Source: Haliotis cracherodii
Taxonomy: Eukaryota
DNA: 64,000 nucleotides
NCBI RefSeq assembly: GCF_022045235.1
Contig: NW_027266266.1
Location: 17,732,001-17,796,000 of the forward strand
Direction of reading: 5' to 3'
Shown in pieces: positions 25,841 to 54,853 of this stretch. The position numbers and the translations under genes are program-made. Position 1 is the first letter of the stretch; every line of letters starts with the position of its first letter. The notes beneath the pieces are model-generated. The model made no database searches. It was not told the origin of the DNA and was given only the letters and a program-made list of their open reading frames with translations.

Positions 25841-25843
<3 letters not shown>

Positions 25844-25905: not shown

Positions 25906-25908
<3 letters not shown>

Positions 25909-27631: not shown

Positions 27632-29095
27632 ATGGCCGAGTTTAAATGTCTTTCCTGGTTGCTGTCATGTACCTACCTGATCTGTCTTTGTAACTGCCAG
27701 GACAGTATTGTGTCTGTCATACAGAGACTAGATCAGTTTCAGGAGGAACTGCTTGATAACAAGGATGATATGATCCGTATGGAGAAAAGGATACTTAATA
27801 TCATAGATGTCGCTAAGACATCATTGAGAGCTGAATTGAAGGAAAACATACGGGATCAGGTGAGAGAAGCCATGGCCGAGATTCTACAAGGAGAGTCTCT
27901 TCAGGACATGGTGAAAAGTCAGGTCGTCTCTGAAGTGTGGCATCTGAAACAGGGCTACCATCAGATGAAGAGGCAATTGCGTCATGTCTCTAGATCCCTC
28001 AAAGACTTTCAGGACGAGACGGGTGAATTTCATGAATCTGTGCTGAAGAAAGCAGATGTGTGGAATCGGGACAACTCAAGTGATACCTGTGTCAGAGATA
28101 AACACAGACTGGAAATAGAACTACGGAAGTGTGATATTTGTGCTGCTGATCTACAGAAAAATATTGAACGATTCATCGTATTGAACGAGACATGCCAGTC
28201 CCAAATATCACAACTGAAAACAGCGCTTGCTATGCCTGCTTCATCCACCGCCCCTGTAAATGTCACCTCAACCCCCAAATCACCAGTGTCAACCACGTCA
28301 GTGACGACACCCAGCCCAGAGGAGGAGAAAAGTAGGATCCTGATTGCTCCAGGCTGGTCAGGCACCCAGCACCAGTTCCGTCAAATCAACATTCACAGTA
28401 ACTCACTTAGTGTCTATCAGTATCACACCATGAAGTATGTGACATCTGTTGCATACATAGTTAAGACAAAGAAACTTCTGATAGGACTAGCCAACCCTGA
28501 TAAAATAGTGTCATCTACACTAGACACAAGTCACGTGACGGTGCTAAGAGAAGGTGTAGAGACATATGGCATGGCCGTGGATGAAGATCGAGACATTGTA
28601 TTCATAGCCACGTATCAACCACGATACTCAATCAACCGCATGTCTACACAAGGGAAAGACTTTACTGCCATCATTGACTTGTCCAAGTACGGAAGCTATC
28701 CCTTTCAAATTACTCTTGACACAAGGAGAAAGAGGATATATGGGTGTAATGAGGGGAAACTGTTCACAGTGACCTATGATGGTCAAGGTCTGGCAACATT
28801 AGTCACAGGAGGTAGCCTGTTTACTGTAACCCTAGATCAGACAGCTGGTGTGTTGTATTATAACATTGAGAAAAAACTTATGAAGATGACAGTGTCCACT
28901 AATGTGAGTACAGAGGTGACCACACTGAGCGCCGTCCCCTGGAACCTGAGACTGTATAGAGACATCATCTACTTCAGTAGCTGGGGTTCCCCTATTGTAG
29001 GTGCAGTGGATGTGACATACAACAATGCTGTATGCACTCTCCAGTCATTATTCATGAAGGGTGCTACTGTATTACTTATGTGTTTGATTCCCTGA
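27632..29095 (+). CDS. Secreted coiled-coil / YWTD-like six-bladed beta-propeller protein, paralog 1 (487 aa, uninterrupted CDS)
   Basis: Intact ORF conserved in three copies; signal peptide MAEFKCLSWLLSCTYLICLCNC|QDS; heptad-rich aa ~25-200; S/T/P linker 201-234; ~40-aa blades such as YGMAVDEDRDIVFIAT, QITLDTRRKRIYGCN, TVTLDQTAGVLYYN. Confidence 0.9.
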   Translation: MAEFKCLSWLLSCTYLICLCNCQDSIVSVIQRLDQFQEELLDNKDDMIRMEKRILNIIDVAKTSLRAELKENIRDQVREAMAEILQGESLQDMVKSQVVSEVWHLKQGYHQMKRQLRHVSRSLKDFQDETGEFHESVLKKADVWNRDNSSDTCVRDKHRLEIELRKCDICAADLQKNIERFIVLNETCQSQISQLKTALAMPASSTAPVNVTSTPKSPVSTTSVTTPSPEEEKSRILIAPGWSGTQHQFRQINIHSNSLSVYQYHTMKYVTSVAYIVKTKKLLIGLANPDKIVSSTLDTSHVTVLREGVETYGMAVDEDRDIVFIATYQPRYSINRMSTQGKDFTAIIDLSKYGSYPFQITLDTRRKRIYGCNEGKLFTVTYDGQGLATLVTGGSLFTVTLDQTAGVLYYNIEKKLMKMTVSTNVSTEVTTLSAVPWNLRLYRDIIYFSSWGSPIVGAVDVTYNNAVCTLQSLFMKGATVLLMCLIP

Positions 29096-29194
29096 ATTCC
29101 ATGATGGATATTCTACCATGAATTTTGGAAAGAGTCAACTGAATCGTTTAGAATCACAAAAAAACATCTCTGATTAAAAAGCTCATTTGGCGGC

Positions 29195-29267
29195 CACTGT
29201 TGCATACGCTCTCCAGTGACTACCCATGAAGGGTGCTACTAATTCACTTATGTGTTTGATTCCCTGA
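29195..29267 (+). pseudogene. Duplicated terminal coding fragment of the propeller gene (TVAYALQ*LPMKGATNSLMCLIP*)
   Basis: Second copy of the last ~24 codons, 172 bp downstream of the first, followed by a second 3'UTR start. Confidence 0.9.
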
Positions 29268-31140
29268 ATTCTATGATGGATATTCTACTTTAAATATCGA
29301 AAATACTCAACTCAGTTGTTTCGAATTACAATAACCAACAGCTGATTTAAACAGCTGATTTGGCGTCCACATCACCATGGAAACTGGCATTTATAGAAGT
29401 ACTTTTTTCTCAGTCATTGTTGGTAGACATTTTATTGTACATTATATTGTATGAATCTTCGTTACAAAGTGCAGAGGTTCCGTCATTCAAAGCACGAGTG
29501 GCAATAGATAGTGGAAGGAAAACACAATGGAACCCGACTGAGTGAGTGTATTTCCAGTTTTGGGGACAAAAGTTAGCTTAAATTAGGCACCTTTCTATAT
29601 CCGACTGTGACGTCACATCATTTGCGTCACAATGAGCGATAATATTTATGCGCTGCGTGGATTAAAACACAGTACGTTTATCAAGTTCCTTCCAAGCGCG
29701 TGACACCTTACATCGCTGTGAGGAGCATGTACGTTTATCTCTTATTCTATTATGAATTTGGAAATTACTCGATTCAGAGGTTGTCATATCACAATAAAGC
29801 CCCACTGATTGAAACGGCCGATTTGACGGCCGCATCACCGCGGAAGCTAATATTAATAGAATAGTACTGTTTTAAGTCATTGACGGTGGGCATATTTCGG
29901 AACGATGAGCGTTCGGTTACAAATTCAATTTAGTGCGGTTAAATCTACATGTAACCTCACTCTACATTGAAAACACAATCAGTCCATCTCCTACATTTTC
30001 CAACACACGCATATTTGAACCTCCATATATGTCCATCATATAGCAGTAGATTATTAAACTCATTTCGATTATTTGAAGTCGGCAAAAGAGTTGATATAAC
30101 TGTACAGCATCGTGTCCCTGATAGAGTGATTTGCAGATTATAGGTTGGAAATAAAATTAAGTTTAGGTTGTAAAGTCGGTGATATGTACTGTAAGATTTT
30201 ATCAATAAATACATCTTCAGAGTTCCATTGTTATTATCCGTTTTTCCAACTTACACAAAACAATGCAAGCTTCTGTACGAAATACCTCTGCTGACACTAA
30301 GGCACCCACCGTCTTTATATTCTGGGAGGGGCCTTGAGATGTTTTTGAACTAATAATTTGTTCCAGAAGAAAATGGAAGATATCAATTTGACCGCAGGTT
30401 TTCCCCAAAAGCCAATTGCCTGGAGGGGGCTGTGTTTCTTGAAGATACTCTAATGTGAAAAACCTTCATTGTGGGGGCTCTTCATTTCACAGAAATACAT
30501 TGTATGTTTTGAAGCAGAGGCTGAAGACATAGCCCCAGAACATTATACAAATACTTACTCTTGACGTAGGGGTCGGGTCCTCGGGTCCAATGACCTCGTC
30601 AAGAGTAATCAGTCGTTGTCGGTATGCCAAAAATCACTTTAAAGTAAGGTATAATTTGCGTATACTATATCAGTATTCCAGGCTAGCTATATAAAGTGCA
30701 AGCACACAAGCACGTTGCTCTTTAAGTGCAATATTCTTGAACGCGATGTGAGACCCCAATTCACCTGAGACTCTTGTGAGCTAGGGGAGATCACTCTTAC
30801 CGCCATGTCCGACAACCCCATAGTGAGACAAGTGCTCGTAATATGTGTGGCGACACGTGTTTAAAAGAGGAAGGCCAGTTTTGAGTCATTCAATTAAAAG
30901 GTTGCTCGACAATCGTTAAATTGGAAATGGAGAGTTTCCTATTAACATATTAATACCATTTTGTTAAATATACACAGTGGAGGATAATGTGTAAAGCGAA
31001 TGGAGATTTTCAAACGCTATCATCAATCCAATTATTCAAATTAAGGTTTTCAATATTAACTCATGATGGCTGGGGTGCTGGGATAGTCTGGCGGTTTGAG
31101 CGTTTGCTCGTCACGCAGAGTGCCCGGGAAAAATATTAAA

Positions 31141-32160
31141 ATGACACTTGGTGGCCGAGTAAAGAAGATACTTGGTGGCAGAGTAAAGAAGACACTTGGT
31201 GACAGAGTAAAGATGGAACTTGGTGGCAGAGTAAAGAAGACACTTGGTGGCAGATTAAAAAAGGGAATTGGTGGCAGAGTAAAAAAGATACTTGGTGGCA
31301 GAGTAAAAAAGACACATGGAGGCAGAGTAAAGAAGACACTTGGTGGAAGAGAAATGAAGACACTTGGTGGAAGAGTAAAGAAGACACTTGGTGGCAGAGT
31401 AAAGAAGGGACTTGGTGGCAGAGTAAAGAAGTCATTTGGTGGCAGAGTAAAGAAGACACTTGGTGGTTGATTAAAGAAGATACTTGGTGGTAGAGTAAAG
31501 AAGACACTTGGTGGCAGAGTAAAGACTCTACTTGGTGGTAGAGTAAAGATGATACTTGGTGGCAGAGTAAAGAAGGGACTTGGTGGCAGAGTAAAGAAGA
31601 CACTTGGTGGCAGAGTAAAGAAGACACTTAGTGGCAGAGTAAAGACGTTACTTGGTGGCAGAGTAAAGACTTTACTTGGTGGCAGAGTAAAGAAAACACT
31701 TGGTGGCAGAGTAAAGACTTTACTTGGTGGCAGAGTAAAGAAAACACTTGGTGGCAGAGTAAAGAAGACGCTTCGTGGCAGAGTAAAAAAGACACTTGGT
31801 GGCATAGAAAAGAAGACACTTGGTGGTAGAGTAAAGAAGACACTTGGTGGCAGAGAAAAGAAGACACTTGGTGGCAGAGTAAAGACGTTACTTGGTGGCA
31901 GAGTAAAGAAGACACTTGGTGGCAGAGTAAAGAAGGGACTTGGTGGCAGAGTAAAGAAGACACTTGGTGGCAGAGTAAAGAAGACACTTGGTGGCAGAGA
32001 AAAGAAGACACTTGGTGGCAGAGTAAAGACGTTACTTGGTGGCAGAGTAAAGAAGACACTTGGTGGCAGAGTAAAGAAGGGACTTGGTGGCAGAGTAAAG
32101 AAGATACTTGGTGGCAGAGTAAAGAAGATACTTGGTGGCAGAGTAAAGAAGATACTTGGT
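31141..32160. repeat. 24-bp satellite (cttggtggcagagtaaagaagaca)
   Basis: Direct inspection; paralogous larger array 57288-59910 has the same left flank. Confidence 0.98.
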
Positions 32161-33044
32161 GTGTTGTCGAGCTTCTGTGTTTCTGATGTGCGTTGTTGTG
32201 ACAGGTTCAAGCTACCCCGCACTTTAATCCACGAGAATGCGCTCACACAATATTAACATGAGTTGGCACATTATGTGAATCTGCATGCAGTGCCTGTTCG
32301 TATGTGCACACTCCTGATCGGATTCGGAGTCAGAACAGGTTTTGTTTGTTGTTTTGCTTGTCATTTGTGTTGGCTTAACATGGGGCGAGGCTCCATACCT
32401 GGTCACAATGTCTTATGACATGGATAAAATAGTGCTGACTCACTCCACCACTCGTGGTATGTCTAGACTTGAGATGTTTCTTTGTTTATGTGATATTTGT
32501 TATCAGCTTTTACTTATCAAATAGAAGTAATCAGAAATGGTGTTTCAATAGGGTGATTAGGATTATGACAGAATTCCAATACACAGATACTATGGTGTTG
32601 CTAGAATATATAAAATGATATACTCATTAAATGATTTTGATTTCTAAGATACAAAGCCTAATGAAATGTAGAATGTTAAACAGCGATTAGACGGTCTTTT
32701 ATATGACGGTTTAATGTCACTAACCTTCTGAAGAGTACTTTGTATTAAAAATGAAGCGATCTTTCACTGTGCTCTTAACACTTTTTAACATTATAATCAT
32801 TCGGATACCTAAATGTGGCTTGATTTTGCATCCCTATTTTCTTGAAGTATAATACTGCAGAAGGCTAGAGTTTTGTGGAGTCTTCACATTCTCTGGTTCT
32901 GTGTTGGGTTCGACTAGGCAGCGCTTCCTGGGTAAAGTTCCATTCGCTGTCTGGCTTGCGTGTAGATTTTAAACTGCAAATAATAACAATGCTGATAATA
33001 ATAGTAATATTAATACTATTAAAATATATTAAATACATGGCATA

Positions 33045-33460
33045 TATGCAGACCCCGCTTTCGGAATGTCACGCTTGCATCCCAAGCACCAAGTTGTCCG
33101 ACTCCCCATTGTTCTCGGTGCCTTAGGTTTGGTACCTCCCAATCCGTTGACTGACATCAGGAGAGTACCCGGGTTTGCTACCAGGAATACAACCCTTCTG
33201 ACAATCTGGTTAATGCAGAAGGCTGCAGTGTTGGGGAGTCTTCACATTCTCCGAAACGTTCTGGGTGGGTTTGACCAGACAGCGCTTCTTGGGAGAAGTC
33301 CCATTCGCTGTCTTGGCTGCATGTAGAGGGGGCAAGGACCCTGAGTTGATGATGAGCCTAACCAGCCTGACTGTGCCAGGATCACCCAAACCCTCTTTGC
33401 TGCATTTTTTATTTTAATCTGTAAATAATGATAATAATAATAATAATGATAATAACAATA
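33045..33460 (+). mobile_element. 3' end of an R4/Dong-like retrotransposon ending in a (TAA)n tract
   Basis: QVVRLPIVLGALGLVPPN...MQKAAVLGSLHILRNVL; overlaps in sequence with 19290-19390; partial second copy at ~32855-33020. Confidence 0.8.
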
Positions 33461-33652
33461 AAAAAATCATAATCATAATATGAAAGGACAATACAACTTG
33501 AAGAAACAAGCAAACAAAGTAAGGCCACCAAACTAGGCACCATGGGGTCTTCTGCCACCTGCATAGAACTCCCAGCAGGACCATCTCTCTACCTGCGATT
33601 GTTGGCACATTTAGCAGAATATTAACAGAACATATACACAACGATTAAAACC

Positions 33653-34192
33653 GTGTGTACCGGTGCTTGTGTGTCATTCACTCCCCAACAGTGTGTATCA
33701 GTGCTTGTGTGTCATTCACTCCCCAACAGTGTGTATCAGTGCGTGTGTGTCATTCACTCCCCAACAGTGTGTATCAGTGCGTGTGTGTCATTCACTCCCC
33801 AACAGTGTGTATCAGTGCTTGTGTGTCATTCACTCCCCAACAGTGTGTATCAGTGCTTGTGTGTCATTCACTCCCCAACAGAGTGTATCAGTGCTTGTAT
33901 GTCATTCACTCCCCAACAGAGTGTATCAGTGCTTGTGTGTCATTCACTCCCCAACAGTGTGTATCAGTGCGTGTGTGTCATTCACTCCCCAACAGTGTGT
34001 GTCGGTGCTTGTATGTCATTCACTCCCCAACAGTGTGTATCAGTGCGTGTGTGTCATTCACTCCCCAACAGTGTGTATCAGTGCTTGTGTGTCATTCACT
34101 CCCCAACAGTGTGTATCAGTGCTTGTAAGTCCTCACAGCCCACCAGAGTGTATCAGTGCTTGTGTGTCATTCACTCCCCAACAGTGTGTATC
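33653..34192. repeat. 38-bp minisatellite
   Basis: cagtgcttgtgtgtcattcactccccaacagtgtgtat with period 38. Confidence 0.95.
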
Positions 34193-34249
34193 AGGTCAAA
34201 TAAAGAGGTCTGTGTTAAAAAAACATTAAATAAATTACCAGACTATCAA

Positions 34250-37600: not shown

Positions 37601-38466
37601 GTAAGTTTGAAATATTTTCTTGATTGATTAATAACTGTTCTTGGTAAAACTGTCCCTATACATGTAAATCATGCCAGCGCTCTTCAGTAGGTAGTGAAAC
37701 TCGACCGTCATATAAGAGGCGGTCTAAATCGTTGTTTAACAAGCAGCATTCCACATTACCTTCGATAAGTGTGGAGCTTGTAAGACAGAGTTAAATTCCT
37801 TATTATGAACGATTTTGCTATTTCCGTGGCTCCAAAAAGTAAATATGTATTAAATATGAATACCAAGTTATGTTTATATGTGAATACTATGCCACCATAG
37901 GAAGAAAGTACCTCTAACCATATTACACTGAATCTCCTCTGATGAAGTTCACCTAGCTAATGCAAACAGCTGATAATCTTGTTGTTCATAATATGGATGT
38001 GTTCTTAGACAAAGCCTACACATATATACTGTTATATACTTTACTCCGTCATGTGTGATTTAGGATGTATTAATGTGTTATGGGCAGGTGACCTGTTACT
38101 GAATAAACAGTCTGCCTGTCTCAGTACGAAGTGCGTATTTTATACTGATAGTCTTGTCAAAATGAACGATGGTGAATAATTGTATCATACTTTTCAGACA
38201 GAATTGTACTCATATATTACTCGTATTAATCACGTGAATGATGTTCAGCAAATCAGTTACACTAAACATGGCTGCGTTTAGCCCACTCCCGCTTGGCCTG
38301 ACGGTCCCTCGTGTGTCATGTTTGTTTGACATGCCACCTCTACTTGTAAAACAGGATTATCCTGAATTTCCCTTCGGGGTGGTTGTAAGTCGAAACTAAA
38401 CCCTTCAAACATGCACGGTTTTCCGAACACAGCGCAAGGTTGTTGGTATGATTGAATGTGTCTGAA

Positions 38467-38656
38467 NNNNNNNNNNNNNNNNNNNNNNNNNNNNNNNNNN
38501 NNNNNNNNNNNNNNNNNNNNNNNNNNNNNNNNNNNNNNNNNNNNNNNNNNNNNNNNNNNNNNNNNNNNNNNNNNNNNNNNNNNNNNNNNNNNNNNNNNNN
38601 NNNNNNNNNNNNNNNNNNNNNNNNNNNNNNNNNNNNNNNNNNNNNNNNNNNNNNNN
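38467..38656. other. Assembly gap (190 N)
   Basis: Run of n. Confidence 1.
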
Positions 38657-39012
38657 TAACAAGTCTCCTTGTGTCACTCTCATTGTGTGAACATGTCTCC
38701 AAATGTCGCACTCATTGTGTTATCATAACTCCAAATGTCGCACTCATTGTGTTGATATGTCTCCTTGTGACGCAGTCATTGTGTGAACATGTCTCTTTGT
38801 GTCGTACTCATTGTGTTAACATGTCTCTGTGTGTCGCACCCACTCTGTTAACATGTCTCCGTGTGTCACACTCATTCTGTTAACATGTCCCCGTGTGTCG
38901 CACGTATTCTTTTAACATATCTCTGTGTGTCGCACCCATTCTGTTAACATGTCTCCGTGTGTCGCACTCATTGTGTTAACACGTCTCCATGTGGCACAGT
39001 CATTGTGTTAAT
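38657..39012. repeat. 32-bp minisatellite (attgtgttaacatgtctccgtgtgtcacactc)
   Basis: Also at 48775-49005 and 50025-50592. Confidence 0.9.
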
Positions 39013-40311
39013 GTTCACAGTCGCACACTGATCATTTCCTAATAACACAATCTACTCCTGACAACCTTTTCCGGGACAACGATGACTCATTGTTCACCAA
39101 TTGCGTGACCTTGAAGTTTAATATGTAGAAGCACTTCATTAGAGAAATGTAAATTACATATAAATCCTAAAGACGGTCACTCTGTAAATTTAAAATATCT
39201 TTGCACAATTCAAAAAAAAACTTTCCGAGAAAAGGATCCTTTGTACAGGAGTCTGATTGTATACAGATTGTGATTGTGGTTAAATGTAATATGCGTATCA
39301 TACTATATTTAAATGTAAAACAAATACCTGCTGTTACGAAATAAGTATTTACCCAAAACTGCCCGTCCTTACATGTAAATTTTGCACTTGTGTTGAGCTG
39401 TGTCCCTTGTAAACACTTTTATGTACGCTTCATAAATCTATGTTTACTGTTCAGAACTGGAAGCTAAGGTCATGCATTGTATTTGTACTTTTGGCTATTG
39501 TGCCCTACAACTGAATAAACATGCCTGTGTGTTTGTCTGTGTTTCTATCTGTCTGTCTTTACGTCGTATGTACAAACAGGAACTATTTCTTCTTGAGATT
39601 AGCACGTGAACAATCACATTGTGCGAGTATGACTTTGAGAGTAAACTTGCCCCTTGGTGTAGGTCACAGGTACGAGCGCGTGTTTATTATCAGTTAGCCC
39701 CCTTGACATGCATGTGTTACTGGGGGCATTTAGTTGAAGGTGAGATCATAGATAAAAGTACTCCCTCCGTCAGTCGTACAAAGTGAGAAGTGAGAAAACG
39801 GAAGCAATGGGGAATTGAGAACTACAAAATTCAAATTATATTGGAAATATATTTTGATTAGAAAACGTGATTAAAATGCAGATTTTACATTCTAGGGGCA
39901 AGAGAGAATGTGCAGTCATCTTTGGCATCACAATGGGGAGGAGACGTCGTTATCATGGATTGCTGTGATGAACTAAACCATGCATTATTTTAATAAGGGC
40001 GACCACTGTTTAATCTAATATATGTCAATACAGCACATGTAAAGTGCAGTGTTTAAGTATATACTGCTACGTACTTAGATCACCAATGACAGGACTGTGT
40101 GCCACATCAGGTAAGTTGAGATAACCTAGTGCTCTTTGCACCCGGGACACGGTGACACTGACTGCGTAATGATAACCCAATATGTGTAAACATGTACTTG
40201 TACCTCAAGACAGCCACTCATTAGTAGAAAACGTCGTGTCGTACCAAGAGGTACACGCTCACATCACGCTAACGGACAAGGACATCTCAAGGGATATTGT
40301 ACATTCTGAGA

Positions 40312-41775: not shown

Positions 41776-43252
41776 ATTCTACAATGGATATTCTACCATG
41801 AATATGGAAAATACTCCACTCAGTAGTTTCGACTTACAATAACCAACAGCTAATATAAACAGCTGATGTGGCGTCCACATCACAATGGAAACTGATATTT
41901 ATAGAAGTACGTTTTTCCCAGTCATTGTTGGTAGACATTTTATTGTACATTATATTGTACAAACATACGTTACAAAGTGCAGAGGTTCCGTCATTCAAAG
42001 CACGAGTGGCAATAGATAGTGGAAGTAAAACACAATGGAAACCGACTGAGTGAGTGTATTTCTAGTTTTGGGGACAACAGTTAGCTAAAATTAGGCACCT
42101 TTCTATATCCGAATGTGACGTCACATCATTTGCGTCACAATGAGCGAAAATATTTATGCGCTGCGTGGATTAAAACACAGTACGTTTATCAAGCTCCTTC
42201 CAAGCGCGTGACACCTTACATCGCTGTGAGGAGCATGTACGTTTATCTCTTATTCTATTATTAATTTGGAAATTACTCGATTCAGAGGTTGTCATATCAC
42301 AATAAAGCCCCACTGATTGAAACAGCCGATTTGACGGCCGCACCACCGCGGAAGCTAATATTAATAGAATAGAACTTGACGGTAGGCATATTTCGGAACG
42401 ATGAGCGTTCGGTTCCAAATTGAATTTAGATCGGTTAAATCTACATGTAACCTAGCTCTACATTGAAACACAGTAAGTCTATCTCCTACATTTTCCAACA
42501 CACGAATATTTGAACCTCCATATATGTCCATCATATAGCAGTAGGTTAATTGGACTTATTTCGTTTATTTGGAGTCGGCAAAAGAGTTGATATAACTGTA
42601 CAGCATCGTGTCCCTGATAGAGTGATTTGGGGATTATAGGTTTGATATAAAATTAAGTTTAGGTTGTAAAGTCGGTGATATGTACTGTAGGATTTTAGCA
42701 ATAAATACATTTTCATAGTTGCATTGTTATTATCCGTTTTTTCAACTAAAACAAAACAATGCATGACTCTGTACGAAATACCTCTGCTGACACTAAGGCA
42801 CCACCGTCTTTATATTCAGGGAGGGGCATTGGGTTGTTTTTAAACTAATACTTGTTCCAGAAAAAAATGGAAGATATCAATTTGACCTCAGGTTTTCCCC
42901 AAAAGCCAATTGCCTGGAGCGGGCTGTGTTTCTTGAAGATACTCTAATGTGAAAAACCTTCATTGTGGGGGCTCTTCATTTCACAGAAATACATTGTATG
43001 TTTTGAAGCAGGAGCTGAATACATAGCCCCAGAACATTATACAAATACTTACTCTTGACGAAGGGGTCGGGTCCTCGGGCCCAATGACCTCGTCAAGAGT
43101 AATCAGTCGTTGTCGGTATGCCAAAAATCACTTTAAAGTGCCAGTATAATTTGCATATAATATATCAGTATTCCAGTATATCATGGCGTGTCAGCTTAAT
43201 GTGGGAGAAAAACCCGAAATGATGCAGGTCTCAGACGTTTACCACTTCGGTG

Positions 43253-46200
43253 AATGCGCATGCGTCAGAACAGCAAGTCGCTGAAAAGTCTTCTCCACCA
43301 AAATCATCTTATATCTGTATCATTATCAGATACTGTGACGCAAAAATCAGGTAAGGTGACTATGAAGATACCTACAATGGACTCATGTTAGTGAATCATG
43401 AAGATGGTTTTAGGTTTTGCTTAAAATCAAGTGTCCAAAATATGTAGAAATGTTTAAGGAGAATTTACACAAGTGGACTAGTGCTGATTGACTGAGCGTC
43501 CGATTAATCAACAAACAATGGTCAGCCCAAACAGAGTCAGTGAAGCATTGAGTGGCCCTGTCAGCGAGGAAGATGACCTTCGACACGCTACACAAAGTGT
43601 GGATGATATAGAGAATAACATTTTCATTGAAATACACACACGCCTTGGAAAACTAGATCGAATTTCTTTCGAAACTGAACTTCTGGACACATACAATGAT
43701 GATGAAGAAAAACTAAACGAAGTGAGACAAAGTCTTTATGACGTAGCCAAGGAGACTCGACACGATACCCCAAATGGATATCTACCAAAACATGTACAAA
43801 GAGAACATTCCAGGAAGTCTGTGACTGAGAAATATGCGTCTGATGTATATTGCCTCTATGGTTTTATTACACACACAATCCCCTCTCATATACTGGAAAA
43901 ACAAGTACTCAACAAAGGCAAATCAAACGCACGTCCCTACAACGTACTTGGAGATAGTTTGCTGGATACACAAAGAGGTAATGATCTTTTGACCCTAATC
44001 TATACTACGCAGAGCTGGTTTGACTGTCTTAATGATAGGTTTGACTTCGCGACTAAGGTTAAGGCTAACCAGCGAGGATGTAGAGGGGAGGGCGGTGTGG
44101 CAATTTTAGTTAAGAAAATTATACACAGGTACACTGATATATGTGAATGTGAGTATGATAGTTTTGTAGCTGTGAAACTCTCCCGTCCCCAGTGTGCTGA
44201 TATGTATGTAGTGTGTGCTCTGCTCCCCTCCACTAATCACAACACAGTAGTGTATGAGGAGAGTGACAAGGAAGTGTTCGACGTTGTTGATGAGCTATCA
44301 GTTATGTTGTTCTTTGTGGAGATTTTAATACAGATCTTGTAAATTACCCAGCATCCCCTCGCTCTACTGTACTGCATCCATACTTGAATACAGGAAACAT
44401 GGTACCAACATCATACAACTGTGGTGTCATTCAAGGTCAACTCAAGACATTGTGCAACAAGGCTGGAACACAGTCATCTCTGATTGATAATATATTCTTG
44501 CCAGATGCTCTTCAATCATCTGTGTTGACGACCTCTGTCAATAACAACATCGATTTCGAGATATCGGATGATTCACCAGTAGTGGTATCATTCCTTAGGG
44601 ATGCGTTCTTAACAGAGCAAAATCTATGGACTCCCCCAACTTACAAATGGCAGAAGGCGAATGGCCTTGAACTGAAGGATGACACCCTTCCAGACATGAC
44701 ACATGCTGACAGCGATATGATGGAATATTATTTTGATGCTATATTGAGCACTCTCCACACGTCAACAGCAATGTACATCCCAACAGGATACTACAGACCC
44801 TTATTGGAGAGGATCTAGTCTAGACTACTACCACTACCAGATTCGTCATGCTAGACGACAATGGATATCTCAAGGTAAACCTGGAGGAGATGCACATGGC
44901 TCTTATCAATAGTATATGGCAGTAAGATGCAACTTCCCTCGACAGAAAAGAAAAGCAATCGGACAGACACAAGTATGCAGACCCGAACTCTGCCTGTGAA
45001 GTGGACATTGGTGAATTTTATAGAAGTGTCAGGAAACAGAGGAAGACTAATGCAACATGTACATCTCTACTGTATAAAGACAAGACGGCCAGCACACCCG
45101 AGGACATCTGCAATATGTGGACTGGTTATTATGGGGATCTGCTGTCTCCTCTCGGTAGACCTGAGTTTGAAACGGACTTTTATGAGGAAACAAAATCAAA
45201 GGTTTGTGATATAGCAAACAGTAACATATCTGAGAACGATCCAATCCTGACGACAAGTATTGTTGCATCTAATGAAGTGAAATCAACCATTAAGAGGCTG
45301 AAAAACAATAAGTCTCCTGGACCAGACTGTATTACTGTAGAACGCCTCTATAATGCTGACAATCTTCTGTTTAAACATCTGGCACACCTCTACAATATGA
45401 TGATCAGTACTTGTTACACGCCTGTCATGATGAGAACTGGAACTATTATTCCCATCTACAAAGGGAATAATAAAGATAAATGTAACCCAGCTAATTAAAG
45501 CGGTATCACTCTAACATCCAATATTGGGAAGGTTTTTGAGAGGTTGTTGCTAGACAGACTGGAATCCTACATCAAAACCAGTAATCCTGATTTCCCACAT
45601 CGTCTCCAGTGCGGCTTCCGGAAAGAGCATGGCGCCAGTGTTGCTACATATGTTAAAAGAGGCTATTTCCCATTAACAAGATAGACACTCAAATATATAT
45701 GTTGCCTTTCTGGATAACAAAAAGGCCTTCGACAGGATGTGGCATGAGGGGCTGCTACTGAAACTATACAATCTTGGTGTGAAAGGCCGTGCATGGCACA
45801 TTATCCGTCAATCTTACCAAGAAGCAAGTGCTTGTGTTAAATACAATGAGAGGACAAGTGATTTGTTCAATGTTCATCAAGGAGTAGGAAAAGGTCGCGT
45901 GCTCTCAGCATGATTGTTTCTTGTCTATATTAATGACCTGATATCTCAGTTTGATAATCTACAATGTGGACTAATTGTTGGTAAGGAGCTGATGACACTA
46001 CTGTTGTTAGTACGAGTGTACATGGACTGAATATGTCTCTTGATACTATCCACAAGTATGCGCGGCGCTGGAGACTGACGTATAACGCCAATAAGAGCTG
46101 TGCCTTGTCTTTTAGCAATAACAGAAGACATTGTAATAGACCTGTGTTCAGAATTGGCGTTGTGACAATGAAGTACCAAAGTAGTACGATTTATGCCGGC

Positions 46201-47510
46201 TCTCTGTTACACACGGAAAAAACAAATGAACGAACTACTAGAGCTTGTGCTAAGGCGCGACAGACAATCAACTCCTTAAGAAATGTTGGTCTTAGAGCTG
46301 GAGGATTGAGCCTAGTATCTTCATCGATACTGGGCTCGATACTGCGAAACCCAACAGCGCTACTTTGCTCGACGAGTCCAAAACCTTCACAGGAGATCCT
46401 CTCCAGCTGCTACAACTCAGGTTCTAGTATTATGGTCAATGCTGGTCAAAGTGGAGAAAATGAAGCTTCTCTTTCTGGGACGACTCTGTAGAGTTGCAAG
46501 CACAACCATTGTGAAGCCGATTTTCTATCTCAGATTATCCCAGTATGTCACCACTCTCTCACACAGTGCCAGATCCGTAACACACGATCTACTGAATGTG
46601 GCTCAAAAGTATGGAGTGAGTGAGTGAGTATGGTTTTACGCCGCTTTTAGCAATATTCCAGCAATATCACGGCGGGGGACACCAGAAATGGGCTTCACAC
46701 ATTGTACCCATGTCGGGAATCGAACCCGGGTCTTCGGCGTGACGAGCGAACGCTTTAGCCACTAGGTTACCCGACCGCCCCTCAAAAGTATGGATTCTCA
46801 GGCGTCTTAGATAAACTAATCAACTCTGGGGAATTTCCACCTAAAAGTGTATGGAAAAGCATGGTACAACGAGCTATTAGTGAGTCTGAAAATATGAATT
46901 GGAGAAATACTTTGCAACAGCGTCCAGACATGCATAGGTTTAGTTCTAGCCACACCTGCCTTGCACCACATCGTCTCTAGTCTCTGTGTGTATGGTATGA
47001 TATTGCTTCCCCCTGTATATGCTCTTGTAAAGCTCGGCATATTACCTGTAACGTCAGGACTGTGTCTTATCTGTAACTGTGAATGTGATGGCATTGTTAA
47101 GCACCAATTGTTTTACTGGATGGCCTAATGAAACAGAGAAATGTGCTTAGCGAGTCTCTATTTGACAATGTCAGCCTTGACACCTATCTCAGACTTGAGG
47201 ACACGTCTAGTGATAACGTCAAGCTTCTGGCACGTGCCTGTGGTCCAGGACATGACACTTGACAGCTGGGCAACATTCATGAGTATCGTGGCTAAACATG
47301 TCAGCTCATGGAACTTAACATCCATATTGTATTTGTGAAGCTATGTCACACATCATGTAAATATAGTTTCACGCATCACTTCATTACTGCTTACCCAGCT
47401 CAATCTGTTGTATTTATATGTATTTTGTCATTGCCGTTGTCAAATTATGTAATGTAATTATATGTACTACTCTCCGAATCCTTGGGGGAAATAAAGAGTA
47501 TTCATTCATT
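43253..47510 (+). mobile_element. Near full-length decayed LINE (L2/CR1-group): ORF1 remnant, AP endonuclease, RT
   Basis: GEGGVAILVKK, SLIDNIFL, ISDDSPV, KSPGPDCIT, IIPIYKG, QCGFRK, FLDNKKAFD; many stops; ends aataaagagtattcattcatt. Confidence 0.9.
46616..46780 (-). mobile_element. SINE family 1 nested in the LINE, 14-bp TSD
   Basis: TSD ctcaaaagtatgga at 46602-46615 and 46781-46794. Confidence 0.95.
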
Positions 47511-49004
47511 TATCACCCCTCAAGAATGCGACCACACAATATTGACATGGGTTGGCATGTTTTGCGAATTTGCATAAAATACTTGTTCGTATGTGTACGT
47601 CGAACTGTGCCTGAACAGAAACTTATTGTCTAACACGTCTGGTAGTCTTCGTGGAGTTGATAAAACACGAGAAAGTTTGAAATATTTTATTGATTAATTA
47701 ATAACTATTCTTGGTAACACCTATACATGTCAATCATGCCAGCACGTGTACGAGCATATTGTACTACAAGAAAAGAGAGTTGCAAATTATAGCTACATAT
47801 AGGCATCCAAATAAAATGTTGAAAAGTGTTTTGAGTACAGTGAAAAAGGCCTAACAGTCACTTCATTTACTATATGTACTCTCCAGTAGGTCGTGAAACT
47901 CGACCGTCATATAACAGGCGGTTTAAATCTTTGTTTGAAAAGCGGCATTCCCCATTGTCTAAGATATGTATCCCAGAGTGGAGATGGAACATTTTCCATT
48001 CAAGTGTAGAGCTTGTAAGACAGAGTTCAATTCCTCATTATGAACGATTTTGCTATTTCCGTGGCTCCAAAAAGTAAATCTATATTTAATATGAATACCA
48101 TGTTATGTTTATATGTGAATACTGTGCCACTGTAGGAAGAAAGTACCTCTAACCATATTACACTGAATCTTCTGTGATGAAGTTCATCTTGCTAATGCAA
48201 ACAGGTGATAATCTTGTTGTTGATAATATGGATGTGTTCTTAGACAAAGCCTACATATATATACTGTTATATACTTTACTCCGTCATGTGTGGTTTAGGA
48301 TATATTAATGTGTTATGGGCAGGTGGCCTGTTACTGAATAAATTGTCTGCCTGTCTCAGTACGAAGCGCGTTTTTGATAGTGATGATCATGTGATAATGA
48401 ACGATGGTGAATATTTGTATCATACCTTACAGACAGAATTGTAATCATATATAACTCATATCAATCACGTGAATGATGTTCAGTAAATAAGTTACACTAA
48501 ACATGGCAGCGTTTAGCCCACTCCCGCTTGGCCTGACGGTCCCTCGTGTGTCATGTTTGTTTGACATGCCACCTCTACTTGTAAAACAGGATTACCCTTA
48601 ATTAAAAAAAGTCGAAAATAAACGCTTCAAACATGCACGGTTTTCCGAACACAGCGCAAGGTTGTTGGTATGATTGAGTGTGTCTCAACATGTACGGTGT
48701 GATAGTGTGCGTGGGGGGTGGGGGTGGGGTGGGTGGGGGTGTTGGGGGGGTTGGGGGAGTGGGGTCGCAATCAGTGTGTTAACATGGCTCTTTGTGTCGC
48801 ACTCATTGTGTTGACATGTCTCCGTGTGTCACAGTCATTGTGTTAACATGTCTCCGTGTGTCGTACTCATTGTGTTAACATGTCTCTGTGTGTCGTACGC
48901 ATTGTGTTAACATGCCTCCGTGTGTCGCACCCATTCTCTTAACATGTCTCCGTATGTCACACTCATTGTGTTAACATGTTTCCATGTGGCATAGTCATTG
49001 CGTT

Positions 49005-50000
49005 AATGTTCATAGTCGCACACTGAGCATTTCCTGATAACACAATCTACTCCTGACAACCTTCTCCGGGACAACGATGACTCGTTGTTCACCAAGTGTG
49101 TGACCTTAAAGTTTAATATGATGAAACACTTCATTAGAGAAATGTAAATTACATATAAATACTCAATACGGTCACTCTGTAAATTTAAAATATCTTGGCA
49201 CAACTTAAAAATATACTTTCCGAGAAAAGGATCCATTGTACAGGAGTCTGGTTGTGTACAGATTGTGATTGTGGTTAAAGGTAAGATGCGTATCATATTA
49301 TATTTAAGTGTAAAACAAATACCTGTTGTGACAATAAGTATTTACCAAATACTGCTCGTCCTTATAATGTAAATAAGGCCTTGTAAATATTTTACAGTCA
49401 TAGCAGCAACGTACAATCACAGTTGTTGCCATTTACTAAAACCGTGTGTTCAACATGTAAATTTGCAGTTGTGTTGAGTTATGTCCCTTGTAAACACTTT
49501 TATGTACGCTTCATAAATTTATGTTCAGAACTGGAAGCTAAAGTTATTGCATTGTATTTGTAATTTTGGCTATTGTGCCCTACAACTGAATAAACATGCC
49601 TGTGTGTTTGTCTGTTTGTCTATCTGTCTGTCTTAACGTCGTATTTTCGTTTATTTGAAGTCGGCAAAAGAGTTGATATAACTGTACAGCATCGTGTCCC
49701 TGATATAGTGATTTGGGGATTATAGGTTTGATATATAATTAAGTTTAGGTTGTAAAGTCGGTGAGCCTGGAGCGGGCTGTGTTTCTTGAAGATACTCTAA
49801 TGTGAAAAACCTTCATTGTTCGGCTCTTCATTTCACAGAAATACATTGCATGGTTTGAAGCAGAGGCTGAAGAAATAGCCCCAGAATATTATACAAATAC
49901 TTACTCTTGACGAAGGGGCCCTCGCGTCCAATGACCTCGTCAAGTGTAATCATTCGTAGTCGGTATACCAAAAATCACTTTAAAGTGCCAGTATAATTTT
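49005..50000 (+). other. Gene-less fourth propeller cassette (5' flank fused to 3' flank)
   Basis: 49028-49644 matches upstream flank ~25971-26874 (without the SINE); 49645-50000 matches downstream flank ~30063-30657 with a further deletion. Confidence 0.85.
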
Positions 50001-50024
50001 CCCCAAACGCCCTTATTCTGAAAT

Positions 50025-50592
50025 ACACTCATTGTGTTAACATGTCTCCATTTGGCAAACTCATTCTGTTAACATGTCTCCGTGTATCACAGTCATTGTG
50101 TTAACATGTCTCCGTTTGTCACACTCATTGTGTTAACATGTCTTCGTGTGTCACACTCATTGTGTTAACATGTCTTCGTGTGTCACACTCATTCTATTTA
50201 CATGTCACCGTGTCTCCGTGTGGCGCACTTATTCTGTTAACATGTCTCCTTGTGGAACACTCATTTTGTTAACGTGTCTCCGTGTGGCACACTCATTGTG
50301 TTAACGTGTCTCCGTGTGGCACACTCATTGCGTTAACGTGTCTCCGTGTGGCACACCCATTGTGTTAACATGTCTCCGTGTGGCACACACATTGTGTTAA
50401 CATGTCTCCATGTGGCACACTCATTGTGTTAACATGTCTCTGTGTGTCACACTAATTCTGTTAACATGTCTGCGTGTGTCACACTCATTGTGTGAACTTG
50501 TCCGTGTGTGTCACACTCATTGTGTTAACACGTCTCCGTGTGTCGTATGCATTGTGTTAACATGTCTCTGTGTGTCGCACTCATTGTGTTAA
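50025..50592. repeat. 32-bp minisatellite
   Basis: Same unit as 38657-39012. Confidence 0.9.
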
Positions 50593-51453
50593 TGTTCATA
50601 GTTGCACACTGAGTATTTCCTCATAACACAATCTACTACTGACAACTTTCTCCAGAACAACGATGACTCCTTATTTACTAATTATGTGACCTTGAAGTTT
50701 AATATGAAGAAACACTTCATTAGAAAAATGTAAATGATATTTAAATCCTTTAGACGGCCCCTCTGTAAATTTAAGATAGCTTTGCACAATTTAAAAATAA
50801 ACTTTCCGAGAAAAGGATCCATTGTACAGGAGTCTGATTGTTTACAGATTGTGATTGTGGTTAAATGTAAGATGCGTATCATATTATATTTAAGAGTAAA
50901 ACAAATACCTGTTGTGACAAAATAAGTATTTACCAAATACTGCTCGTCCTTACGATGTAAATAAGACCTTGTAAGTATTTTACAGTCATAGCAGCAACGT
51001 ACAATCACAGATGTTGCTATTTAATAAAACCATGTATTGAACATGTAAATTTGCAGTTGTCTTGAGCTATGTCCCTTGTAAACACTTTTATGTAAGCTTC
51101 ATATATCTATGTTCAGAACTGGAAGCTAAAGTTATTGCATTGTATTAGTAATTTTGGCTATTGTGCCCTACAACTGAATAAACATGTTTGTCTGTTTGTT
51201 TATTTGTCTGTCTTTATGTCGTATGTACAAACAGGACACATTTCTTCTTGAGATTAGCACATGAACAATCACATTGTGCGAGTATGACTTTGAGAGTAAA
51301 CTTGCCCCTTGGCGTAGGTCACAGGTACGAGCGCCCTGTTTATTATCAGTTAGCTCCCTCGACAAGCATGTGATACTGGGGGCATAGGGCATAGGGTAAA
51401 CGTCAGATCATAGATCAAAGTACTTCCTTAGGCCAAAAATTTGTTCGTCAGTC

Positions 51454-52843
51454 CATTCACTTTATTCAGATGTATTGTAGGCCATAGGCCCATGATACAA
51501 TGGTTACAGTGTGGTAATGGGAGTTGGAGATCCCAACAAACTTTGCCTTAGATTCATAGCTTTCAGAATATACATGGCTAGTTTCTTAACAGTAAATGGG
51601 TTGGTAGATGACATTAAAATATTGTACTTATGTCTTGTCGGGAACTCATAATAATGCAAGGATATATATTCTGACCTCAAAGCTTGATAACAATCACAAA
51701 TTAAAATAAGGTGATACTCATCTTCGATATAACCATGTTTACAGACAGTACAAACTCTTTCTCCTCTAGGTTCCTTGTTATGTCTACCTGATTCAATTCT
51801 TAGATGATGAGAACTACATCTGAAACGTGCCATAATACTTCTAAATTTATCACATGATAGCCTTGTAATATACATTTCAACACCAAATGTTTGCTTGTAC
51901 AAAGAATAATAATATGATTTCGAACTTTCATGTATAGCTAAATGCCAGTCTTGTTGGTACGATAATTTTAGCCTCACAAAAAAATCCTTTATGAACAAAG
52001 GTATATTTGCAACACACTGTTGATCCCATATAAAACCAAATCCTGCTGACACAATTATGTGTCTAATTTTGGAAACCCAGTTTACTTTACCATTACTTAC
52101 AGCTTGCAGTTGCATATTATAGCATTTCTTTACATATCTAGATTCTGGCATTTTCAAAATTTTGCACCAATATTTAACAACTCTTTTATAAGAATAAATG
52201 TATAGAGGATATCGGCCACATTCACCTCTTATAACGTGATTTGAGGTGGAGACCTTAACACCTAAAAAGCGCTTACAAGCCCTCATGTGGATACTTTCAA
52301 TATCATTACAAATTTCGGGACTCAGACCCCATATTTCTGCTCCATATAGCAAAATTGGGCTAATTTTGGTATCAAATATTTTAAAAAATAAATGAAAGGG
52401 TATGGGCTTAAAGTTGGACAGAGATTTCAGTATGCCACATAGTACTTTCTTAGCTTGTAGTGCTGCAACCTTAACATGTTTACCCCATGATGAAGTTCTT
52501 GTAAAAGATAAACCTAAATATTTGTACGAGGTTACACACTCAAGACTGGAACCATCAAAGTTCCATTTCTCATACTTTGATAAAACACCACCTTTTTTAA
52601 AAACAATGACTTTAGTTTTTTCCAGATTAACACACAAATGGTAGGTATCACAAAAATATTTTAACGTATCAATACGTTTCTGGAGACCAGAAACAGTGTC
52701 AGAAAGCAAAACAACATCATCTGCAAATAATAACAAAAATAGTTGAATACGTTCAGGATGAAGCTGTATGCCTGTTGAACAAGATAATTCTATATCCATT
52801 GCCAACTCATTTATAAGCATAGAAAATAATAATGGACTTATTA
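51454..52843 (-). mobile_element. Young 5'-truncated LINE (L2/CR1-group RT C-terminal half) with 9-bp TSD
   Basis: Uninterrupted frame ISPLLFSMLINEL, LLFADD, YKYLG, CTVC..EDEYHLILIC to the stop at 51504; TSD tcgtcagtc at 51445-51453 and 52844-52852; empty sites at ~27086 and ~39768. Confidence 0.95.
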
Positions 52844-53389
52844 TCGTCAGTCTTGTAAAGTGAGAAGTGAGGAAACGGAAGAATTGCAGATTGAGAACTA
52901 AAAAAATCAAATTATATTTGGAAATATATTCTGATTAGAAAACGTGATGAAAAAATGCAGATTTTAAATTTTAGGGGCAAGGGAGAAAGTGCAGTAAACT
53001 TAACGTCTGAATGGGCGAGAAGAAGTTGTTACCATGGTTTGCTGTGATGAACTAAACCATGCGTAATTTTAATAAGGGCGACCACTGTTTAATCTAATAT
53101 ATGTGAATACAGTACATGTAAAGTGCAGTGTTTAAGTATATGCTGCTACATACTTCGATCACCAATGATAGGACTGTATTCCACATCAGGTAAGTTGAGA
53201 TAACTTAGCGTTCTTTGCACCCGGGACACGGTGACACTGACTGCGTAATGATAATCCAATATGTGTATACATGTACTTGTACCTCACGCCAGCCACTCAG
53301 TAGCAGAAAACGTCGTGTCGTACCAAGAGGTACACGCACACATCACGCTAACGGACAGGACATCTCAAGGGATATTGTACATTCTGAGA

Positions 53390-54853
53390 ATGGCCGAGTT
53401 TAAATGTCTTTCCTGGTTGGTGTCATGTACCTACCTGATCTGTCTTTGTAACTGCCAGGACAGTATTGTGTCTGTCATACAGAGACTAGATCAGTTTCAG
53501 GAGGAACTGCTTGATAACAAGGATGATATGATCCGTATGGAGAAAAGGATACTTAATATCATAGATGTCGCTAAGACATCATTGAGAGCAGAATTGAAGG
53601 AAAACATACGGGATCAAGTGAGAGAAGCCATGGCCGAGATTCTACAAGGAGAGTCTCTTCAGGACATGGTGAAAAGTCAGGTCGTCTCCGAAGTGCGGCA
53701 TCTGAAACAGGGCTACCATCAGATGAAGAGGCACTTGCGTCATGTCTCTAGATCCCTCAAAGACTTTCAGGACGAGACGGGTGAATTTCATGAATCTGTG
53801 CTGAAGAAAGCAGATGTGTGGAATCGGGAAAACTCAAGTGATACCTGTGTCAGAGATAAACACAGACTGGAAATAGAACTACGGAAGAGGGATATTTGTG
53901 TTGCTGATCTACAGAAAAATATTGAACGATTCATCGTATTGAACGAGACATGCCAGTCCCAAATATCACAACTCAAAACAGCTCTTGCTGTGCCTGCTTC
54001 AACCCCCGCCCCTGTAAATGTCACCTCTATCCCCAAATCTCCAGTGTCAACCACGTCAGTGACGACACCCAGCCCAGAGGAGGAGAAAAGTAGGATCCTG
54101 ATTGCTCCATACTGGTCAAAGACCCAGCACCAGTTCCGTCAAATCAACATTCACAGTAACTCACTTAGTGTCTATCAGTATCACACCATGAAGCAGGTGA
54201 CATATGTTGCATACATAGCTAAGACAAAGAAACTTCTGATAGGACTAGCCTACCCTGATAAAATAGTGTCATCTACACTGGATACAAGTCACGTGGCGGT
54301 GCTAAGAGAAGGTGTAGGGACATATGGCATGGCAGTGGATGAAGATCGAGACATTGTATTCATAGCCACTCATCAACCAGGATTCTCAATCAACCGCATG
54401 TCTACACAGGGGAAAGACTTTACTGCCATCATTGACTTGTCCAAGTGCGGAAGCCATCTAAGGCAAATAACTCTTGACACAAGGAGAAAGAGGATATATG
54501 GGTGTAATCAGGGGACACTGTTCACAGTGACCTATGATGGTCAAGGTCTGGCAACATTAGTCACAGGATGTAACATGTATGCTGTAACCCTAGATCAGAC
54601 AGCTGGTGTGTTGTATTATAACACTGAGAAGAAACTGATGAAGATGACAGTGTCCACTAATGTGAGTACAGAGGTGACCACACTGAGCGCCATCCCCTGG
54701 AACATGAGACTGTATAGAGGCACCATCTACTTCACTTGCTATAGTTCTCCTATTGTAGGTGCAGTGGATGTGACATACAACACTGTTGCACACACTCTCC
54801 AGTCAATACCCATGAAGGGTGCTACTGTTTTACTTATGTGTTTGATTCCCTGA
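53390..54853 (+). CDS. Secreted coiled-coil / YWTD-like beta-propeller protein, paralog 3 (487 aa)
   Basis: Colinear, gap-free paralog; ATG of the signal peptide at 53390. Confidence 0.9.
   Translation: MAEFKCLSWLVSCTYLICLCNCQDSIVSVIQRLDQFQEELLDNKDDMIRMEKRILNIIDVAKTSLRAELKENIRDQVREAMAEILQGESLQDMVKSQVVSEVRHLKQGYHQMKRHLRHVSRSLKDFQDETGEFHESVLKKADVWNRENSSDTCVRDKHRLEIELRKRDICVADLQKNIERFIVLNETCQSQISQLKTALAVPASTPAPVNVTSIPKSPVSTTSVTTPSPEEEKSRILIAPYWSKTQHQFRQINIHSNSLSVYQYHTMKQVTYVAYIAKTKKLLIGLAYPDKIVSSTLDTSHVAVLREGVGTYGMAVDEDRDIVFIATHQPGFSINRMSTQGKDFTAIIDLSKCGSHLRQITLDTRRKRIYGCNQGTLFTVTYDGQGLATLVTGCNMYAVTLDQTAGVLYYNTEKKLMKMTVSTNVSTEVTTLSAIPWNMRLYRGTIYFTCYSSPIVGAVDVTYNTVAHTLQSIPMKGATVLLMCLIP

Follow-up and report, generated by a model that had tools for sequence, protein, structure and literature searches.

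YWTD-type propellers (LDLR class B), known from LDLR, ApoER2, LRP2/4/5/6, nidogen, and ROS1/Sevenless, consist of six four-stranded blades made from a repeat of about 42 residues; the repeats are offset, the last strand completes the first blade, and the strand-1 motif ends in Asp. To our knowledge, these propellers occur almost only within large membrane receptors and matrix proteins and always together with EGF modules. Propellers can also be carried at the end of an oligomeric stalk, as in the olfactomedin family, whose members are secreted, disulfide-linked coiled-coil tetramers with C-terminal propellers (PMC4463452). Here we describe a stretch of 64,000 nucleotides from the black abalone, Haliotis cracherodii (NCBI RefSeq assembly GCF_022045235.1, contig NW_027266266.1, positions 17,732,001 to 17,796,000 of the forward strand), which we call the window and number from its first letter. 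Three tandem genes within it, between 27632 and 54853, encode proteins of 487 residues that would bring the two arrangements together, with a YWTD-type propeller as the head of a long helical stalk. On balance, we consider it reasonably probable that each of these proteins forms a secreted, disulfide-linked coiled-coil oligomer that holds several propeller heads on a flexible hinge, with a diversified top face that is predicted to bind ligand.

By structure and family profile, the abalone head is homologous to the YWTD propellers, though below the curated Pfam threshold for the class B repeat, and shares their blade number, repeat length, offset repeats, and strand-1 motif. What accompanies the head is different. 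Pfam assigns no named domain in the window proteins and detects no EGF, LDL-A, or transmembrane-associated domain, in agreement with a first-pass annotation of the window that had described them as free of EGF, LDL-A, and any membrane anchor. The abalone chains end at the closing strand with a Cys-Leu-Ile-Pro-type tail, and the N-terminal partner of the propeller is the predicted coiled coil or, in sister paralogs, a PAN domain. The closest functional analogy is with the olfactomedin family (olfactomedin-1/noelin, myocilin, and sea-urchin amassin), which has the same design; the abalone proteins likewise have a leader, long helices, and heptad-spaced cysteines in the stalk, from which their oligomer is predicted. 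In contrast, the OLF head is five-bladed and unrelated in sequence to the six-bladed abalone head, Pfam gives no PF02191 match, and no OLF structure is found among the top 50 structural matches. The resemblance to olfactomedins is convergent and does not amount to membership. The first-pass annotation had seen no named parallel for a stalk-plus-head layout with a propeller as the head; the combination is indeed new, and the olfactomedins are a parallel that it missed. TRIM-NHL proteins (TRIM2/3/71 and Brat) also place a six-bladed propeller after a coiled coil as a binding module, and the NHL match to the abalone head reaches Z 20-22. TRIM-NHL proteins reside in the cytosol and have RING and B-box domains, whereas the abalone proteins have a leader, give no Pfam match to RING or B-box, and have a propeller nearer to YWTD than to NHL. 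Collectins, ficolins, FREPs, C1qDC proteins, and angiopoietin-like proteins likewise join an N-terminal oligomerizing stalk to a C-terminal globular head, and they are multigene and diversified in invertebrates. Unlike the collectins, ficolins, FREPs, and C1qDC proteins, the abalone proteins have an alpha-helical stalk rather than a Gly-X-Y one, the cysteine pattern suggests an even-numbered oligomer, and there is no Pfam match to collagen Gly-X-Y, C-type lectin, fibrinogen-like, or C1q domains. Both the domain and the design principle found at the locus are known, but their combination and its lineage-specific expansion have not been described before.

Head, stalk and hinge

In the AlphaFold2 model, which was built on 40 family sequences, residues 235-487 form 24 strands arranged as six four-stranded blades with a predicted local distance difference test score (pLDDT) above 90. 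The top Foldseek matches in the PDB are all YWTD propellers (ApoER2, LDLR, LRP4, LRP6, nidogen, and LRP2) with E values of ~1e-15. YWTD propellers also fill the top 11 VIA-align entries at Z 24-30 (nidogen 30.2, ApoER2 29.9, LRP4 29.8, LRP6 27.9, LDLR 26.7-27.8, and ROS1 25), and TolB, Kelch, and NHL propellers come next at Z 22-23. Superposition of the head on YWTD structures gives a root-mean-square deviation of 2.2-3.0 Å over 235-250 residues (Z 25-30). At the sequence level, a search with a single protein matched LRP2 at 3e-5, and a family profile searched against the PDB matched LRP2 at 1.5e-15, LRP6 at 5e-4, and nothing else, with agreement in repeat register. As a divergent homolog of the YWTD (LDLR class B) propeller, the head lacks the EGF module that in LDLR, LRP, and nidogen proteins always comes next. 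The six LDLR class B-like blades named at first pass are borne out by the Foldseek E value of 1e-15, the VIA-align Z of 26-30, and the LRP2 profile match. The divergence is most visible in the motif that gives the propeller its name. The strand-2 segments (ILIAP, LLIGL, VFIAT, IYGCN, LYYNI, and IYFSS) do not keep the Tyr-Trp-Thr-Asp consensus and retain only a hydrophobic-aromatic (Tyr/Phe) remnant, and the conserved Asp residues 317, 363, and 402 occupy the structural Asp position of the strand-1 motif.

Closure of the ring was read from the strand order and the LRP2/LRP6 alignment, not from coordinates. The closing strand (residues 480-486), next in order to the fourth strand of blade 6, has the strand-1 pattern except that a Cys stands where a small residue is usual, and residues 235-267 supply strands 2-4 of the closing blade. 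That the C-terminal strand closes blade 1, as had been suggested from the letters of the window, is upheld by this strand order and by the LRP2/LRP6 repeat register. The chain ends at residue 487, one residue beyond the closing strand, where Pfam detects no EGF module, and the tail ([Ile/Val/Met]-Cys-[Leu/Ile]-[Leu/Ile/Val]-Pro) is retained even in paralogs that are 25-30% identical. Two other roles for the tail cysteine were tried and rejected. Prenylation of the Cys-Leu-Ile-Pro end as a CaaX box was set aside because a leader peptide is present and the motif is a buried strand (pLDDT ~93), and a Cys372-Cys484 disulfide was set aside on topology, without coordinates, as it would join strand 2 of blade 4 to strand 1 of blade 1.

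The N-terminus of the chain is hydrophobic, and residue 23 is preceded by small residues at -3 and -1. All paralogs, even at 25-35% identity, start with such a leader and small residues behind it, in line with the signal peptide recognized at first pass. Sequons at 148, 185, and 424 are retained in 15-18 of 18 paralogs; together with the leader, they are consistent with secretion of a protein that is probably N-glycosylated. Residues 26-199 are helical in the AlphaFold2 model at modest confidence (~175 helical residues). When the stalk alone (residues 24-200) was folded, helices formed at 26-147 and 152-199 with a pLDDT of 78 and a predicted template modeling score of 0.30. The stalk is thus modeled as long helices without a compact fold, as expected of a chain that needs partner chains, and Foldseek returned no match to the stalk-only model, as expected for long bare helices. 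The hydrophobic periodicity of the stalk is 3.48-3.64 residues, and three paralogs have an exact 7-residue deletion (residues 47-53). Cys153, Cys167, and Cys188, retained in 14, 12, and 13 of 18 paralogs, respectively, are spaced by 14 and 21 residues and so share one heptad position, and none of them finds a partner cysteine in the remaining stalk helices. These features argue for a parallel, in-register coiled coil with interchain disulfides. Because the cysteines occupy one heptad position, an even-numbered disulfide-linked oligomer would be likelier than a collectin-like trimer. Of the long coiled coil claimed at first pass, the long helices and heptad signs stand, and from them we infer the oligomeric state. 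Pfam matches of the stalk to DUF7260, dCache_2, and XH are all sub-threshold and were dismissed as coiled-coil noise. Between the stalk and the head, residues 201-231 are Ser/Thr/Pro-rich and disordered (pLDDT <50), which fits the earlier description of a mucin-like hinge. The length of the hinge varies by 12-residue Ser/Thr/Pro repeats, with 72 additional residues in one paralog.

One-sided variation of the head

The variation between paralogs is concentrated on one side of the propeller. Topology alone was used to divide the head into a face A, made up of loops 4-1 and 2-3 with two adjoining residues of the strands; a face B, built in the same way from loops 1-2 and 3-4; and the blade core (all that remains). 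A comparison of the three window genes finds variation at 32 of 91 sites on face A and at 9 of 98 on face B (Fisher P = 1.6e-5). Over 18 paralogs, the mean entropy is 1.14 bits for face A versus 0.38 bits for face B (P = 1e-9), and face A accounts for 27 of the 30 head positions with the greatest variability. Examples of variable-face positions are 241, 269, 287-290, 310, 328-332, 355-356, 374, 395, 433-435, 451-454, and 476-480. Because both faces consist of exposed loops, the asymmetry is not merely one of loops versus strands. Ratios of nonsynonymous to synonymous differences (pN/pS) were taken from seven phylogenetically independent pairs and come to 1.12 for face A, 0.37 for face B, 0.57 for the blade core, 0.38 for the stalk, and 0.97 for the hinge; six of these pairs have a face-A ratio greater than 1. 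Purifying selection acts on the stalk, as seen in the ratio of nonsynonymous to synonymous substitution rates (dN/dS) of 0.13-0.37 in close pairs and in dN<dS at P = 1e-20 over the seven independent pairs. For face A, the numbers suggest diversifying selection.

The location of the variable positions can be compared with a YWTD receptor by way of the profile alignment with LRP6 E1. Position 356 (2.86 bits, among the most variable of the head) aligns with LRP6 W183, and positions 328 and 312 align with W157 and R141, all three of which we take to be ligand-contact positions. Position 358 aligns with N185, which is a sclerostin contact on the top surface of LRP6 (PMC7585440). By this alignment, the variable face is the predicted counterpart of the ligand-binding top surface of YWTD receptors.

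Taken together, the proposed molecule would work as follows. After secretion, the chains would assemble via the long parallel coiled coil, probably into a disulfide-linked dimer or another even-numbered oligomer, and at the tip of the stalk the flexible mucin-like hinge would carry at least two six-bladed propellers of divergent YWTD type. Ligand would be bound on the top face, which loops 4-1 and 2-3 make up, as it is in the LRP6, LRP4, and nidogen propellers. The paralogs would differ in this top face while the rest of the head (opposite face and blade cores) and the stalk stay conserved, so that the tandem family could provide a set of multivalent soluble binders with differing specificities that draw their strength from avidity. 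Both ligand binding by the variable face and the adaptive nature of its variation are points that we infer from this pattern. As no motif is repeated from blade to blade and the variability is centered at the channel top, one composite site that accepts a protein or peptide seems likelier than a multi-site lectin.

The family and its gene array

The first-pass annotation had dealt with a family of three genes, a limit that was lifted by a search of the window's genome in which full-length matches without stop codons were counted as intact. At least 19 intact full-length copies are present in the genome, along with pseudogenes, fragments, and dozens of more distant paralogs. Eighteen of the intact copies are on the window's own chromosome-scale contig, in clusters near 14.4, 17.5-17.8, 39.35-39.72, and 40.34-40.46 Mb. 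The distant paralogs are on other contigs, are 470-640 residues in length, and have the same leader, helical region, propeller, and tail. One of them, at locus L001 (G000:C56:12598640-12602640, open reading frame (ORF) 1068-2999), is a 644-residue protein with the same leader, propeller, and tail, in which seven Cys-x-Cys pairs spaced 26 residues apart (146/148 to 302/304) form a repeat module between stalk and head. Contigs C6 and C23 carry arrays of propeller exons that belong to proteins with a PAN domain ahead of the same propeller, and protein P0068 has PAN_1 above threshold N-terminal to the shared propeller. The propeller module is therefore common to at least two architectures.

In a collection of 5.8 billion proteins, all 45 close relatives are named "uncharacterized protein" and come from H. 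cracherodii, H. rufescens, H. rubra, and H. asinina. An exhaustive HMMER scan of 1.84 billion representatives returned 41 proteins below 1e-10, of which all that can be named are from Haliotis, and the matches beyond those 41 are generic YWTD proteins. One full-length protein with the same layout and tail, P0077, is only 25-31% identical to anything in this genome and on that ground comes from another organism, so the family may extend beyond the genus Haliotis. Searches with a distant-paralog profile and with P0077 added no taxa, and a feature search of the ESM Atlas gave sub-threshold leads only (0.77). We found no paper on the family in the published literature. With every named relative an "uncharacterized protein," the earlier statement that no named family has such an architecture holds.

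Within the window, all three genes are on the + strand. Gene 1 (27632-29095) is an intronless coding sequence (CDS) that, read as an ORF from its ATG, gives 487 residues and a stop. Gene 2 (40312-41775) and gene 3 (53390-54853) are intact paralogs of 487 residues that are 89% and 90% identical to gene 1, respectively; the listed ORF of gene 3 reaches upstream to 53261, and the family start is the ATG at 53390. None of the three has an internal stop, and their proteins align without gaps at 89-90% identity. Start-to-start spacing is 12,680 bp for genes 1 and 2 and 13,078 bp for genes 2 and 3, which together with the ORFs and protein identities confirms the three intact 487-residue paralogs, about 12.7-13.1 kb apart, of the first reading. 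In gene 1, the signal peptide is encoded at 27632-27697, the helical stalk at 27701-28231, and the Ser/Thr/Pro hinge at 28232-28333, the last two as delimited by AlphaFold2 secondary structure and pLDDT, and the six-bladed head at 28334-29092, as delimited by the AlphaFold2 model and fold matches. Each gene is part of a larger duplication unit. In self-BLAST, the conserved core of the first unit spans 26683-30681 (+) and comprises ~0.95 kb of upstream sequence, the CDS, and the 3′ untranslated region (UTR), and the cores at 26683-30681, 39383-43254, and 52840-56295 are 90-92% identical to each other. Only this core of ~3.5-4 kb is common to the copies; the remainder of each unit is made up of satellites and retroelement pieces.

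The sole run of N in the window (38467-38656) is an assembly gap between genes 1 and 2, 9.4 kb past the gene 1 stop and 1.66 kb before the gene 2 ATG. To its right lies a 32-bp minisatellite (38657-39011), found again in the next unit at 48764-49006 and 50025-50592, its left flank (37680-38466) aligns with 47879-48688, and none of the listed ORFs crosses it. The gap is an unresolved intergenic satellite that bears on no reading frame, and on its account the 12.68-kb spacing of genes 1 and 2 is an estimate. Gene 1 differs from genes 2 and 3 by a tandem duplicate of ~175 bp at its 3′ end (29195-29370, +), which repeats the last ~75 nt of the CDS and the start of the 3′ UTR.

Transcript-like cover of gene 1 was assessed with four public runs, guessed to be RNA, from three studies with three organism labels, whose contigs were placed on 25800-31300 at ≥93% identity. 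Contigs cover 27456-30215 (+), which corresponds to the CDS and ~1.1 kb of 3′ UTR, at summed contig depths of tens to ~2,000. Cover is near zero at 26720-27455 and beyond ~30400, and AATAAA is found at 30150 and 30204, with the cover stopping just downstream. A DNA run would also cover the unique flanks, so transcripts are favored over a DNA origin, and the subfamily to which the window genes belong appears to be transcribed; the expression that the first-pass annotation had called for is in this sense supported by transcript-shaped cover in four likely-RNA runs. Collapse of the paralogs keeps the contigs short, and expression is assignable to the subfamily rather than to one copy. In run X1, one contig jumps from 29176 to 29349 and omits the 3′-end duplicate of gene 1, so transcripts or paralogs that lack this duplicate exist. 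X1 and X5 belong to one study, and their cover differs about tenfold, which is a weak measure. A donor-like CAG|GTAAGT at 27432-27438, 200 nt before the ATG, is conserved at the same offset in genes 2 and 3, and an AG is present ~20-25 nt ahead of the ATG in all three genes; a small intron in the 5′ UTR is possible.

Much of the DNA around the genes is repetitive. A stretch of ~0.5 kb upstream of gene 1 (26168-26719) has a summed contig depth of ~20,000 to ~1,000,000 in all four runs, exceeding that of gene 1 by two to three orders of magnitude; its many internal joints and loose ends mark it as an extremely abundant dispersed repeat in the transcript data. Relatives of this repeat are found upstream of genes 2 and 3 (39028-39380, 49023-49377, and 50609-50965), and it has no Rfam match. 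A 24-bp minisatellite follows gene 1 (31143-32161, 42 copies) and gene 3 (57289-59915, 111 copies) and yields long spurious ORFs on both strands, such as a 396-residue repeat of an eight-residue Pro/Ser/Val/Phe-rich unit, that are not genes. Gene 2 is followed by a retroelement-like insertion in place of this minisatellite. The spacer of genes 2 and 3 contains retroelement remnants at 43488-46491 (+), where the ORFs have no Pfam match, and at 51507-52910 (-), where an ORF has a reverse-transcriptase domain (RVT_1, E 5e-11). Minisatellite arrays of 36-38 bp at 33649-34194, 23142-24256, and 19393-19746 give Cys-rich pseudo-ORFs in three frames and are noncoding repeat DNA. A weak tRNA-like match at 63761-63819 (-), with 30.8 bits against an Rfam threshold of 29 over model positions 7-64, may be a tRNA-derived repeat rather than a gene.

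Possible functions and significance

Several points weigh against a multivalent binder with a diversified ligand face. The assignment of the faces used the topology of the strands rather than coordinates, and Pfam Ldl_recept_b (PF00058) stays below threshold in 40 of 40 members. When the stalk (residues 24-200) was predicted as a complex of two chains, the score was 0.08, with the mark at 0.32, and this result was counted neither way; Asn185 falls at core position d of the assigned heptad register yet lies within a conserved sequon, so the register may shift at this residue. The RNA type of the public runs is only a guess, and their short contigs cannot assign expression to one copy. In terms of selection, the face-A pN/pS is not significantly above 1 (P = 0.19), and relaxed constraint fits the face-A numbers as well as positive selection does. 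Head and stalk trees also disagree, and synonymous divergence (dS) differs between the domains in some pairs; paralog L014, for example, differs from the window genes by a head dS of 0.08-0.14 and a stalk dS of 0.36-0.45. This discordance indicates gene conversion, which disturbs pairwise dN/dS. The same observations could be accommodated by a structural extracellular component of mucus, matrix, or shell, in which the head would vary because a young, redundant array is under relaxed constraint and undergoes gene conversion, rather than for diversified specificity. A face-A ratio near 1, a mosaic dS that points to conversion, a mucin-like hinge that grows by 12-residue Ser/Thr/Pro repeats, and the role of the nidogen YWTD propeller as a matrix connector would all suit such a component. 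Simple redundancy, however, is not expected to relax one face only; the loops of the opposite face are as exposed and yet have a pN/pS of 0.37, and the same positions vary recurrently over 18 paralogs. We regard a structural role as unlikely. An enzyme borne on a stalk, from the group of six-bladed hydrolases and lyases (SGL/gluconolactonase, paraoxonase, and strictosidine-synthase-like), is very improbable. Such enzymes do occur lower in the structural list at Z 19-21, and a few members have sub-threshold DUF5050 matches, but YWTD receptor propellers score 5-9 Z units higher and the sequence profile finds LRP proteins only. These enzymes have their active site at the mouth of the central channel, and no part of the abalone head varies more than the surface there; the three conserved Asp residues are accounted for by the structural strand-1 position.

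For the favored reading of a soluble multivalent binder, two settings of recognition can be weighed. Humoral immune recognition is a possible setting that we hold tentatively: the proteins would be opsonins or propeller-headed functional analogues of collectins, ficolins, FREPs, and C1qDC proteins that bind microbes and cross-link them or flag them for hemocytes. The family is multicopy, tandem, apparently lineage-restricted, and predicted to be secreted, and recognition families of invertebrates typically show a diversified binding face like the putative one here. The roughly tenfold difference in cover between X1 and X5, weak measure that it is, is compatible with regulated expression. Propellers also act as lectin heads elsewhere, as in the tachylectins, but the six blades of the abalone head differ from each other and do not have the repeated per-blade motif that is typical of multi-site propeller lectins, which would disfavor glycan binding. 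Reproductive recognition, with the proteins in the egg coat, on sperm, or in seminal or spawning fluid and evolving fast under sexual conflict, is an improbable setting in our estimation, even though the fertilization proteins of abalone are a classic case of rapidly evolving secreted gamete proteins. A fast-evolving putative binding face beside a conserved scaffold would fit it, as would the restriction of the named members to Haliotis. A set of at least 19 intact paralogs together with a wider superfamily would nevertheless be unusual for gamete-recognition loci, and none of the searches gave a link to ZP-N, lysin, or sp18.

Beyond the individual molecule, the family could represent a novel abalone class of soluble recognition receptor, a broader claim that we put forward with more doubt than conviction. 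The class would consist of disulfide-linked coiled-coil oligomers with YWTD-type propellers, with a ligand face diversified over a tandem repertoire of ~20 genes with the help of gene conversion, would belong to a wider superfamily of CLIP-tailed propellers carried on a coiled coil or a PAN domain, and would serve in non-self or gamete recognition. What sets the locus apart is that a YWTD domain stands alone as the head of a small, predicted secreted protein, has been multiplied in tandem, and varies on the face with which its relatives bind their ligands. If ligand binding proves true, the family would add a new type of head to the stalk-plus-head recognition proteins of invertebrates and would be a second, independent solution that joins a coiled coil to a propeller beside the olfactomedins. 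The family is compact and intronless, and is therefore easy to express and test. Given ligand binding, its members would be candidate genes for disease resistance or fertilization biology in abalone, including the endangered black abalone.

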